64,000 nucleotides of DNA from Saccostrea cucullata (taxonomy: Eukaryota): NCBI RefSeq assembly GCF_032062105.1, contig NW_026926499.1, forward strand, positions 186,001 to 250,000, in the 5' to 3' direction. The notes beneath the pieces are model-generated. The model was given only the letters and a program-made list of their open reading frames with translations, was not told where the DNA came from and ran no database searches. Below, one piece after another: positions 29,275 through 52,432 of the stretch (position 1 is its first letter; the number at the start of each line of letters is the position of its first letter). The position numbers and the translations under genes were made by a program.

Positions 29275-30508
29275 TCATGAAATGGACATGTTTTCTAGTG
29301 ATTTATTTACATCACGCAGACGTTTCCTCCCGCCATTTCTGTGACGTGGATAGCACGTGGTTGCTGGAAACCGATGACGAAGACGCTTCCTGTCGCCCCG
29401 CTTCAGACGTCTCTTGATTTTACACGGAACTCTAGATGTTGAAAAGAAATCCGGCAGGCTATCTGGAGTTTCCTCCGTTACTGCTTCCGCTCTTTTACAA
29501 CATTTTATTCTGTCCCAGCGTGGATTTGTTTGATGTGTATTGTGATGTGTGATACTATCACCTCTGTTGAAACCAATCTCTTCTGTACCGTACAACCCAC
29601 TCAAATTTTCGTCAGAGAATTCTGAAAAAGAGAAAATATTTAAATTAACCAATAACAAAGACAGATCAAGATTTTTTCTTTTCCTTTTTTTTTTTGCTTT
29701 CTAACATACGTTACATGATATCGATAATGTACATTTATAAAAGTTGTTTTTTTTAATATTTCATTTTCGGCTGATTATACATAAAAACTGAGATGTTATA
29801 TTTTCTCGTCGTCTGCCTCACTTCTTATTGTCTAAAACGAAACAAAATATGGAATGTGCATACATCAATTTTATAACATTCTTTTTCGTCTTTCCATTAA
29901 GTGCCAACAATTAATTAAAATTGCTATATATTTCGATTAAATCACTCGCATCTAGGATAAAGTTAATTTGGTGTGCGAGAGTGTCCAGTATTTTCAAGGG
30001 GTACATTATCATGAGGCAATTTTTTAAGGAGTGATAAAACATTAGATAGAGTTTCTTAATTAGGTATACCTGTTATATAGATATTGAGATCCTCCTGTGT
30101 TCTATAGGTAATCGCTTCGTTCAGCTCTTCTTGGGAGGAAAGCGTAATCATATCTCCATCACTGTCTGTAATTTATTTTTTTTTAAATCTCAATTTTTTT
30201 AATATAATAATATTACATAACCTCCACTAAACATATGATTCATTTACATTTTCAAAGATTATCATAAAAATATATCTGGTTTGAAAACAAATTCATGCAC
30301 CAATAAAAACAACGAAATTAAGATATTGTTTATTTATGGATTGTACTATTTATAGTTCTGTTTACATACCTTTCCATTGAAGAGTGTACCTCTGTATATG
30401 AGGAAAATTTTCTTTGATTTCTGACACCAACGATGTATAGTCTGGACTCCCCTCGACAAAATCAATTACATGAAATATACCTTTTTCTGATATAATATTT
30501 ATTTTCAT
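29275..30508 (-). CDS. Small PB1-domain protein with Arg-rich tail, copy 1 (193 aa); exons 30508-30370, 30165-30070, 29621-29275
   Basis: MKINIISEKGIFHVIDFVEGSPDYTSLVSEIKENFPHIQRYTLQWK|DSDGDMITLSSQEELNEAITYRTQEDLNIYIT|EFSDENL...KRRLKRGDRKRLRHRF...; OPCA motif WKDxDGDxITLSS; GT-AG phase-1 junctions; TATA at 30649-30643; frame kept in all copies. Confidence 0.85.
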
Positions 30509-30599
30509 TTTCCACGTGTTTACAAGTATTTATTTGAGTGTATATAAAATTATTCAGTTCTTTTTACTAACAAATGTAAATCAATGTAATTTTCCTAAA

Positions 30600-31030
30600 A
30601 AGGTATAAGCGTCAATAAGTGCGCTTTTGCGCCAACAGGCGCTTTTATAGGGCGCTAATAATAGTCATGTGATTAATTCTAAAAATATCAAGAATGTTCT
30701 AAATCTTGTACTTCCGCCAACCCACACATAATGAATATTTAAATTAGCATGTCTTCTAAGTCATTATATCTTAATTTTTAGGCATTATCTGCAATGTATT
30801 ATGTAATGATTTATTTTAACCTATATTTCTGCATCTTTAGCTAGCAGAAAAGTAATGTAAGTAAAGAAATATTGTTTATTAAACCTTTTGAATAATGAAT
30901 ATTAATGATACGTGAACTTACCATGACCCCTCACGTGACTCGATTACGAAATACCAATCACATGACTAACCACTCGGCGCCTATATAAAGGCGCCCAAAG
31001 CGCCATTGAGCGTAGAAGCGCCCAGGTGAA
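30600..31030. promoter_or_regulatory. Bidirectional mirror-symmetric promoter, copy 1 (also ~38550-38975 and ~49270-49700)
   Basis: Two opposed TATA boxes (30649-30643 minus, 30982-30989 plus), each flanked by GCGCC repeats and preceded by an identical AATCACATGACTA; TCACGTGAC at 30931; CCAAT at ~30954. Confidence 0.75.
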
Positions 31031-48969: not shown

Positions 48970-49828
48970 CACCAATAAAAACAACGAAATTAAGATATTC
49001 TGTTTATTTATAGATTGTACTATTTATAGTTCTTTTTACATATACCTTTCCATTGAAGAGTGTACCTCTGTATATGAGGAAAATTTTCTTTGATTAATGA
49101 CACCATTGATGTAAATTCTGGACTCCCCTCGACAAAATCAATAGCATGAAATATACCTTTTTCAGATATGATATTTACTCTCATTTTCCACGTGTAAGTA
49201 TTTATTTGAAAGTATAAAATTATTCAGTTCTTTTTACTAACAAATGTAATTCAATGTAATTTTCCTTAAAAGTATAAGCGTCAATAAGTGCGCTTTTGCG
49301 CCAACAGGCGCTTTTATAGGGCGCTAATAATAGTCATGTGATTAATTCTAAAAATATCAAGAATGTTCTAAATCTTGTACTTCCGCCAACCCACACGTAA
49401 TGAATATTTAAATTAGCATGTCTTCTAAGTCATTATATCTTAATTCTTAGGCATTATCTGCAATGTATTGTATAATGATTTATTTAAACCTATATTTCTG
49501 CATCTTTAGCTAGCAGAAAAGTCATGTAATTAAAGAAATATTGTTTATTAAACTTTGTGAATAATGAATATTAATGATACGTGAACTTACCATGACCCCT
49601 CACGTGACTCGATTACGAAATACCAATCACATGACTAACCACTCGGCGCCTATATAAAGGCGCCCAAAGCGCCGTTGAGCACAGAAGCGCCCAGGTGAAT
49701 ATTTTGATAGCAGCTGAACGTATAAGACTATCAAATTCCTAAAAGGTACTGGTACAAACTTTCTTATTAAAAGAAAAAAATTCAAGTTATTATTTATTTG
49801 TAAACAAAACCACGTGTATCAACAAATC

Positions 49829-52432
49829 ATGTTGAAAGTGAAAGTTACGCTCATGTCTGCCAAAGAGTCAGAAATACGCCGGACGACGCTGGAAAATGAT
49901 CCAGATTTCGCTGAATTAGAGAGAAAAGTGTCAGAGTTGTTCGGCGAAACGACTGGATCTTTTACGTTCCATTGGAAAGGTAAAATCAGTCATTTTATAT
50001 TTGACGTATATAATCCTCCATTTACCTAGTTTTTTAGGCTACCTTTATCCACTGTAATATACTAGTAATTGCAAATGAGATAAAAAGGAGACAGTATTCT
50101 TAGCGAAAAGTCTGAATTTAACAGTTATTTTGAAACCATTAACATACCTTGTATGTTGTATAAAAAGTGGATTTTAAAGGAAAATCTCTCCAGACACTAA
50201 AAATTCCTATCAAAAAATGATAAAGCTTGTCACATCCTCTAATAAAATATGAAGGAATATGACAGTGGAAACTAATAGTTTATGAAACGATTTATAAACA
50301 TTTCCCCCAAATATTTGTTCCCCTTGAATCATTGTTTATTCTATATTATTTTGGTTCTGAAATGAATGGAATTTATTTAATTAACACATATTGATTAATT
50401 TGTAGATGATGAGGGTGATTTAATCACGATGTCGAGTTCTGAGGAGTTTCAAGAGGTGATGAAAGGCGCAGCCAAGGAGACCCTGAGAATTTTTCTTCGA
50501 AGAATAGAAGGTAAATTTTTCACAAGCTTTTATATGAATTTAAAAATAATGTTTTTAAATTTTTTTTATGAATAAACAACATGAACAAGTCCTCTCTATT
50601 TACATGCCTCTTAATACATTTTTGTATTTTGTAGATCAGTCCAAATCGGAGGGGGGCATGGAATTTAATGATGATAATCCTGGTAATGAACAGGTGAGCT
50701 AATAATATTTATAATGTGCTTCGGTCCGTTGAAGGGTGTTTTTCTTAATTTTTATTCGTTCTGCAAGAGAATATGTTATTTCAATTTCTAGTTAGGATCT
50801 TGCTCCCTGAAATTCCTAGGCAATCTTAACACTTGAAAATTCAATCTTACTGTATTTTTTTAATTGAAGGATACGTTGACTCCTGAAGAATATGGAACCA
50901 GGAGCTGGGGAAGCCGCCGACGTTATTGGAGAGGATTGGGTCAAGGTCAGGGTCCACTGCCACTTCGTAGGTTTAGAAAAGCCGAGCAGCACCCGGAGAA
51001 TGATCAATCTCTCTCTGAAAGGAGGATGCGAAGGTTTATGCGTCGCAAATTTGAAACCCGTGAAAGATTTGATCAACCTCGTGGTAGCATCGATCGATTC
51101 CGAAGCAGATGTGGCAGTCGTCGGAATGCAATGCCCAGTGAAGACTGCCTCGAAAAAACTGGCTCTTTTTGCCGCTGGAACGGGAACTACTGGCGTCGTA
51201 GATGCAATCAGCATTCCGTCCGACATCTAAAAGAGAGGTTGGATGATGCATATATGGCGCGCGGTAGTTGCCGCTCAAGAAGGAGAAATCGGGAATGTTG
51301 CCCAAGGAGAAGATGCTGCAAGCGAGCAAATTCGGCTCCAACTACTCGTCGTTTTGGAAGAAATCTTAACGATTTCGGGATGATGATGCGTGGAAAAAGA
51401 TGCAGACGATCAACATCCGTCCCTGTGTGCAGGCAGGAAAAAGATGACGAAATTCAAGTTTCTCCGATATGCAGACAAAGTAGATTCCAAAATGCAAAAA
51501 TATGGCTGAAGATCAAGGAAGACGGTTCTCCTACACACGTCTGCGAGTCTTTTACTGATTCCGCCAGTGGAGAAGAGAAGAGGTGTCATAGACGGCGCTG
51601 TAAAAGCTATCGAAGAAGAGCAGCTATGCTTGGAAACGAAACGTCAAAGAAAGTCAATGATTCAGCTTCCAAGAATAAACATGACGAGGAACCTGGAATT
51701 TCAGAACTTGTTGAAACAATGACCATTGAGGAGGATAAAGAGGGTACCGAAGAATCGGATGCAGGGACAAAGACCACTGAGGAGGGTAAAGAAGGCACCG
51801 AAGAAAGAGACACAGGAACAGGTGTCAGTAGAAGGAGAAATTGCAGATACCGTCGACATCGTGGTGAGGATGATGAAACAGATGAGAACAATCAATCAGA
51901 GGAGACAAAGAAAAGGAAGTATCACTGCAAGCACAGGTGTGGGCGTAAGAAGCACTCTGGTGAAGCTCAGGAAACCCCCGCCAAAAACTGGGAAATGAAT
52001 GAAGAGGATGAGATGGAAGCAAAACGGCAGAGAAAATGCAAAATAAAGGTAAACCACCAATCTATGGATAGAGATGGTTCCACAAAATGCAGAAATACTA
52101 AAGAACACGGCGTAAGAATCCTCACTTTGAAAGTTCGAATGAATGACGAAGGGATGAGACCCAGAAAACTAGCACGGAAACTTGTCAGGATTCTCAACCA
52201 GTACAGTGCAGACTGTCAGGAGAACAGACCATGGGGAAGAAGATGTGGACGAGAATTTCGGGGAAGACCACGTGGCAACGACTTCGAGCGTCAGATCCGA
52301 AGAAGGCTGCGTCGTCAAAGATGTCGTCAGGGAAGAGTCCGTTTTCTGTCGCCCGAATTTCCAGGCAATGTCGAAGAGAATATTGCATGTTATGGACCAA
52401 GGAGAATACGTCCACGTGACTGTCCGTGGTAA
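49829..52432 (+). CDS. Large PB1/Arg-rich protein, copy 3 (625 aa, most divergent); exons 49829-49979, 50406-50510, 50635-50693, 50870-52432
   Basis: Same exon structure; only in-frame indels (+5 aa) relative to copies 1 and 2. Confidence 0.88.

Follow-up and report, generated by a model that had tools for sequence, protein, structure and literature searches.

A head-to-head pair of PB1 genes in oysters, probably derived from p62 and triplicated in Saccostrea cucullata

A window of 64,000 nucleotides (nt) from the oyster Saccostrea cucullata (contig NW_026926499.1, positions 186,001 to 250,000) contains, in three tandem units, two diverging genes whose products begin with a PB1 domain and end in an arginine-rich tail. 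The two genes, termed here long and short, are best explained as divergent paralogs of p62/SQSTM1 that have kept the PB1 domain and in which disordered basic tails appear to have replaced ZZ and UBA. The chances are about even that they form an oyster-family pair in which a filament former and a less abundant, length-setting cap would be transcribed jointly under stress.

Comparison of the window with itself delimits three units, at about 29.1-35.0, 36.1-43.7 and 43.7-53.0 kb, which share 85-93% nucleotide identity. Each has a plus-strand long gene of four exons and a minus-strand short gene of three exons, and all introns are GT-AG. The ATGs of the two genes are 652, 655 and 645 bp apart in units 1, 2 and 3. 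The long products have 620, 620 and 625 amino acids (aa) in copies 1, 2 and 3, and the short product has 193 aa when intact. A phase-1 intron at WK/D is present in all six genes. The six loci are annotated as uncharacterised S. cucullata genes. The genes and the promoters between them are as follows.

29275-30508, minus strand: short copy 1 (LOC134271856), exons 30508-30370, 30165-30070 and 29621-29275; 193 aa; acidic-face PB1, basic patch and C-terminal motif like a nuclear export signal (NES)
30509-31159: shared bidirectional promoter of unit 1, with M-box and TATA each way at 30644-30672 (minus) and 30958-30989 (plus), a CLEAR-type (coordinated lysosomal expression and regulation) E-box at 30931, a DR5-type (direct repeat 5) element at 30913-30929, and blocks like a heat-shock element (HSE) and an octamer
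31160-33740, plus strand: long copy 1 (LOC134271855), exons 31160-31310, 31695-31799, 31912-31970 and 32193-33740; 620 aa; PB1 with both faces and an Arg/Cys-rich disordered tail
37128-38454, minus strand: short copy 2, exons 38454-38316, 38125-38030 and 37474-37128; 193 aa; the NCBI model LOC134271858 begins at a later Met
38455-39108: shared promoter of unit 2
39109-41758, plus strand: long copy 2 (LOC134271860), exons 39109-39259, 39695-39799, 39913-39971 and 40211-41758; 620 aa
44776-49184, minus strand: short copy 3 (LOC134271840), disrupted, exons 49184-49046, 45859-45764 and 45204-44776; 164 aa, the basic patch mostly lost and the NES-like end missing
49185-49828: shared promoter of unit 3
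49829-52432, plus strand: long copy 3 (LOC134271859), exons 49829-49979, 50406-50510, 50635-50693 and 50870-52432; 625 aa

An earlier note, made from the sequence alone, had described this threefold amplification of two diverging spliced genes about 650 bp apart, a PB1 domain split by the same intron in both, and Arg-rich tails on otherwise divergent proteins. All of this is borne out. Short and long are alike in the PB1 domain alone (about 36% over 66 aa), and Arg makes up 16-18% of the tails, although the short protein is near neutral overall (net +2 to +6) despite its Arg-rich tail. The further statement that frames and splice sites are preserved across copies holds for the GT-AG sites throughout but not for the frame of short copy 3, which is broken by a 92-bp hairpin. 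A frameshift suspected by eye in short copy 1 was ruled out, its reading frame being intact. An assembly artefact or haplotigs were also ruled out: the copies are 7-15% different and carry private insertions, and copy 3 is set apart from copies 1 and 2 by a 9-nt indel that is present in some transcripts of a related oyster and missing from others.

In an exon-by-exon profile search, the first half of the Pfam PB1 domain is matched by exon 1 of long and the second by exon 2, and the full-length products in the database match PB1 with E values of 9e-11 and 3e-10. With Pfam scores above the cut-off and a beta-grasp fold, the proteins belong to the PB1 family, as had been expected of a profile search. 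No ZZ, UBA, kinase, C1 or FW (N_BRCA1_IG) domain was found in a Pfam search of the full-length long and short products, which agrees with the earlier failure to see ZZ, UBA or kinase; the same search detected the ZZ (E 6e-13) and UBA_5 (E 2e-12) of oyster p62. Nor was a folded domain detected in the tails, which have no Pfam match; short has no Atlas match, and its tail is predicted with a pLDDT (predicted local distance difference test score) of about 40-55. Comparison of the long and short tails with each other and with the p62 tail found no homology.

Descent of long and short from p62 is very probable, as judged from shared introns, the best matches to solved structures and a p62-like promoter core, and a p62-like origin as proposed earlier is upheld on these grounds. 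Two introns are common to long, short, p62 and a p62-like gene, one interrupting PB1 at its D codon and the other, in phase 1, where PB1 ends. Relative to the D-codon intron, that of TFG in the same genome lies two codons later and that of MEK5 two earlier, and Par6 has none there. The best solved-structure match of long is p62, and that of short is also p62 when compared by fold. As in p62, the PB1 domain is N-terminal, and long keeps K7, the R21/R22 pair and the acidic loop. The pair differs from p62 in having no ZZ, no UBA and, in long, no conserved LC3-interacting region (LIR), although the motif scan picks up the LIR of p62 itself; the p62 tail, with net charge -10, cannot be aligned with the strongly basic tails of the pair. 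True p62, with PB1, ZZ, LIR and UBA, is on contig C5957 and NBR1 on C13308, both away from the array. Two other PB1 sequences were encountered. One belongs to an unrelated protein of 362 aa (P0068, locus L025; metagenome assembly), which combines a p62-type PB1 with a basic tail and lacks ZZ and UBA, so that the architecture may have more than one origin. A single-exon PB1-like domain (L019, C317:33501-33695) lies inside an unidentified long open reading frame (ORF).

In a tree of PB1 domains, long (support 97/99) and short (99/98) are each monophyletic across oysters, and a sister relationship of the two is neither shown nor rejected (approximately unbiased test, p-AU 0.49). An old inverted duplication, as had been suggested, is plausible: the pairing is old and the promoter halves are alike, but sisterhood is unproven and the tails are without homology. 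It also remains unproven since p62 itself offers an alternative template. SQSTM1 stands head-to-head with a p62-like PB1-UBA paralog on C5957 (L001:9197, minus; L002:1067-9800, plus), with ATGs about 1.9 kb apart. Like the pair, this paralog lacks ZZ, has the same PB1 introns and the head-to-head placement, and is divergent from p62; it differs in its UBA, its acidic middle and tail, its wider spacing and the lack of an M-box plus TATA match.

By its sequence, the PB1 of short fits the acidic-only type, like the chain-terminator PB1 of NBR1 (PMC9582228). However, short has no FW, ZZ or UBA, is only 193 aa long and has the p62-type intron, so that loss of the basic face was probably convergent with NBR1. 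Short as a stand-in for a lost NBR1 was ruled out, since NBR1 is present in the genome; FW matches are found there on other contigs. With aPKC, MEK5, Par6 and TFG the pair shares the PB1 fold, but it lacks kinase, PDZ and TFG regions and its intron position is unlike those of MEK5, TFG and Par6. The PB1 of aPKC was not recovered in searches of this genome. SEPA-1 and EPG-2 of C. elegans are not known to be PB1 proteins. They are a functional analogy only, as a lineage-specific, self-oligomerising receptor and scaffold pair that controls RNA-protein granules (PMC12005284), and no homology is claimed.

PB1 domains pair an acidic face with a basic face, and domains carrying both polymerise. The K7-equivalent lysine, an E-I/M-R-R motif and the acidic loop are found in all nine long PB1s, by which long would be competent to form filaments. 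Short PB1s have the acidic loop (6/6) but not the Arg pair (0/6), and their first hairpin is shorter; the sequence fits the acidic-only type, with the K7 register ambiguous, and since only the acidic face is kept, short would serve as a cap only. In p62 the R21/22 pair stabilises filaments, and acidic-only NBR1 is a chain terminator (PMC9582228).

The long tails contain 17-19% Arg and 4-5% Cys, with net charge +49 to +62, and are also about 15% acidic. A pattern of charge blocks is kept at about 35% identity, composition being conserved rather than sequence. Set in this are invariant islands: two RxxSxP 14-3-3-type sites, KSYRRRA and an NES-type motif. In short, a basic patch is conserved, and all five species have an NES-type C-terminal helix. 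The evidence for these motifs is their positional conservation and not any single motif. Binding of RNA by the PB1 and basic linker of p62 through K7/R21 (PMC9014876) is a precedent for RNA binding by such proteins, not proof of it.

The spacer between the two genes cannot be aligned between genera apart from invariant blocks. An M-box followed by a TATA box points towards each gene; with two sites in each of the three units, the window has six such matches where 0.08 are expected, and the same arrangement lies in front of true p62. Also kept are the CLEAR-type E-box, octamer-like and HSE-like blocks, and the DR5-type nuclear-receptor element (30913-30929 and its copies). The latter is perfect in both Saccostrea species and in C. 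virginica, and deviates at one position in O. edulis and M. gigas. In three species, one half of the promoter is more like the other than shuffled sequences are (2, 0 and 0 of 300 shuffles). C. virginica has lost the short-side core by deletion, and in an unpartnered S. echinata copy this core has decayed; its loss where the short gene is absent provides an internal control for that core. MiT/TFE factors use such E- and M-boxes. We infer that the promoter would respond to MiT/TFE (TFEB-like) and other stress factors, as does that of p62.

The paired arrangement, for which a search in other molluscs had been proposed, recurs in the same orientation in S. echinata (688 bp), Ostrea edulis (662 bp) and Magallana gigas (653 bp; LOC117692966 and LOC105318145). 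Both genes are present in all four oyster genera checked and are paired on the shared promoter in three of four lineages. Flanking genes are shared too: O. edulis, like the window, has Asteroid on the flank of long, and M. gigas has DAD1 on that of short. No full-length relatives outside oysters were found in large database searches. Both genes are under purifying selection across species, with a ratio of nonsynonymous to synonymous substitution (dN/dS) that for PB1 is mostly 0.1-0.36 and for the tails mostly 0.2-0.55.

Transcription was assessed in RNA of a related oyster (90-95% identical), as a check of the junctions, including those of the minus-strand gene, had been advised. All five are present: the three long junctions in raw reads and contigs, and the two short junctions in contigs, with loose read ends in agreement for one of them. 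Joint transcription of the two genes, earlier supposed, is supported by these data. At the low depth available, short amounts to roughly a third to a fifth of long. Protein clusters of the M. gigas type of long have 239 and 89 members, mostly contigs from public runs.

The pair is old, and its triplication is recent, lineage-specific and already partly decayed. Synonymous divergence (dS) among the window copies is 0.05-0.23, lower than the 0.26-0.41 to S. echinata. In short copy 3 a hairpin takes the place of 10 bp of the last exon and shifts the frame, and intron 1 holds a long terminal repeat (LTR) element with a 4-bp target duplication. All three long genes of the window are intact and, with this copy disrupted, two of the short ones. 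The insertions in the array are these.

34985-36070: element of about 1.1 kb with 35-bp terminal inverted repeats, at the junction of units 1 and 2
44907-44998: 92-bp hairpin insertion that frameshifts short copy 3
45999-48969, minus strand: recent non-autonomous LTR element of 2971 bp in intron 1 of short copy 3, with 544-bp LTRs (45999-46542 and 48426-48969) that have 2 differences

The LTR element encodes a 317-aa ORF with hydrophobic stretches and no Pfam match, and LTR-like sequence reappears near 53100-53230. The terminal inverted repeats of the element placed exactly at the unit 1/2 junction are mariner-like. S. echinata and O. edulis carry extra long copies of their own, with a truncated gene or no intact short partner. 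In S. echinata (L007:2273-4840) the long copy paired with short ends at 365 aa though homology runs on, and the intact long copy is unpartnered. At a second O. edulis locus (L009:9280-9345) the mirror promoter is complete, but short is reduced to its first 22 codons. Such frequent duplication and decay of extra copies does not suggest a selected dosage of a stoichiometric unit. The idea that an intact module was amplified for dosage is thus not sustained, given the broken short copy, the unpartnered long copies elsewhere and a dN/dS of 0.78 between the long tails of copies 1 and 2.

As a mechanism, MiT/TFE and other stress factors would drive both genes from the shared promoter. Long would polymerise head-to-tail, alone or with p62, into a filament displaying a dense polycationic brush that may bind RNA or other polyanions, and would be gated by the two conserved 14-3-3-type phosphosites and the export signal. 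The acidic face of short would bind the free basic end and cap the filament, as NBR1 does on p62 filaments. Short could in this way set filament length and hence condensate behaviour, with the pair acting independently or within p62 bodies.

Several observations weigh against a jointly transcribed filament former and cap. The promoter motifs are consensus matches only, and by sequence the best solved-structure match of short is aPKC, narrowly over p62. The tail motifs are individually weak, with chance rates of 5-9% for two RxxSxP sites and 11-26% for the NES, and the predicted model of long (pLDDT 32) is not usable. The raw RNA, from a relative that is 90-95% identical, comprises two runs, with 185 and 167 reads. 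Crassostrea virginica possesses both genes, yet short is not adjacent at the long locus examined there, so that linkage is not obligatory. (This long gene, L008, lies between two asteroid copies, at 430-2613 and 14571-16796, and has the short-side promoter core deleted.) The unlinked locus and the aPKC-like sequence of short would also suit a pair of PB1 decoys or adaptors that work independently, form no module and have their promoter in common through ancestry. Short would then titrate basic-face partners (p62, Par6, MEKK2/3) against aPKC, MEK5 and NBR1, and long would either modulate p62 bodies without regard to ubiquitin or act as a shuttling scaffold gated by 14-3-3. The genome contains p62, NBR1, MEK5, Par6 and TFG, and the supernumerary long copies of S. 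echinata and O. edulis, which have no intact short gene beside them, fit as well. Against independent decoys stand the spacing and mirror promoter kept in three genera and the complementary faces in every ortholog, and this explanation is rather doubtful.

It is more doubtful still that the tails hold the main function, in germ-cell chromatin or RNA granules, in the nucleolus or as a cationic antimicrobial, with PB1 a mere multimeriser and no link to autophagy. The Arg and Cys content, the high positive charge, the conservation of composition over sequence and patches like a nuclear localisation signal (NLS) all favour such a role; yet no signal peptide is evident, the N-terminus being a PB1 strand, the tails are also about 15% acidic, the promoter core is p62-like, and the size of the M. 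gigas-type clusters weakly opposes narrow expression. A split selective-autophagy receptor, in which long would take polyanionic cargo without ubiquitin and short would link to ATG8 through a candidate LIR (acidic-F-F-S-I/V), is highly improbable. Acid-preceded FFSI or FFSV occurs in three of five short lineages (S. cucullata copy 2, S. echinata and M. gigas), and the scan that finds it recovers the p62 LIR; but the core is missing in C. virginica and S. cucullata copy 1, O. edulis has no acidic run, and basic residues follow the core. The filament former and cap remains the preferred explanation.

Outside the array, the window has two synteny anchors.

14174-14512, plus strand: DAD1 exon, left anchor; DAD is also found beyond the short gene in M. 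gigas
54830-57271, minus strand: Asteroid (ASTE1)-like gene, right anchor; O. edulis and C. virginica have it too

A BEL/Pao retrotransposon (19827-27407) lies between the DAD1 exon and the array; its ORF of 1952 aa (20898-26756, minus) is uninterrupted and its LTRs are 97.9% identical. A minus-strand, single-exon ORF at 5726-9634 encodes a multi-C2H2 zinc-finger protein of 1302 aa. Satellite-like tandem arrays at 3350-4148, 42666-43068 and 57278-57588 have periods of 166, 144 and 120 bp.

A literature search by LOC identifiers and topic terms, open-access in scope with subscription journals outside its coverage, found no relevant paper on the orthologs, and the earlier impression that the architecture had not been described is in keeping with this. 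To call it a new system is nevertheless an overstatement, the pair being a variant on the p62/NBR1 theme. The bolder view, in which oysters would have evolved from p62 itself a second, ubiquitin-independent p62/NBR1-like system, a filament protein transcribed together with a cap dedicated to it, that condenses RNA or other polyanions (e.g., viral nucleic acid) under TFEB-type stress control, possibly with hand-over to ATG8, is unlikely. Autophagy has been studied in herpesvirus infection of C. gigas (PMC9014014), and the table of an oyster autophagy survey has one SQSTM1 (PMC7595595). Besides SQSTM1 itself, the genome appears to contain three or more types of gene derived from p62, of which two are conserved across the oyster family and have apparently never been studied. 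The pair may be a natural replay of the p62/NBR1 split into polymer and terminator, placed on one promoter, and would offer a small, soluble and directly testable system for how the length of PB1 filaments is set.

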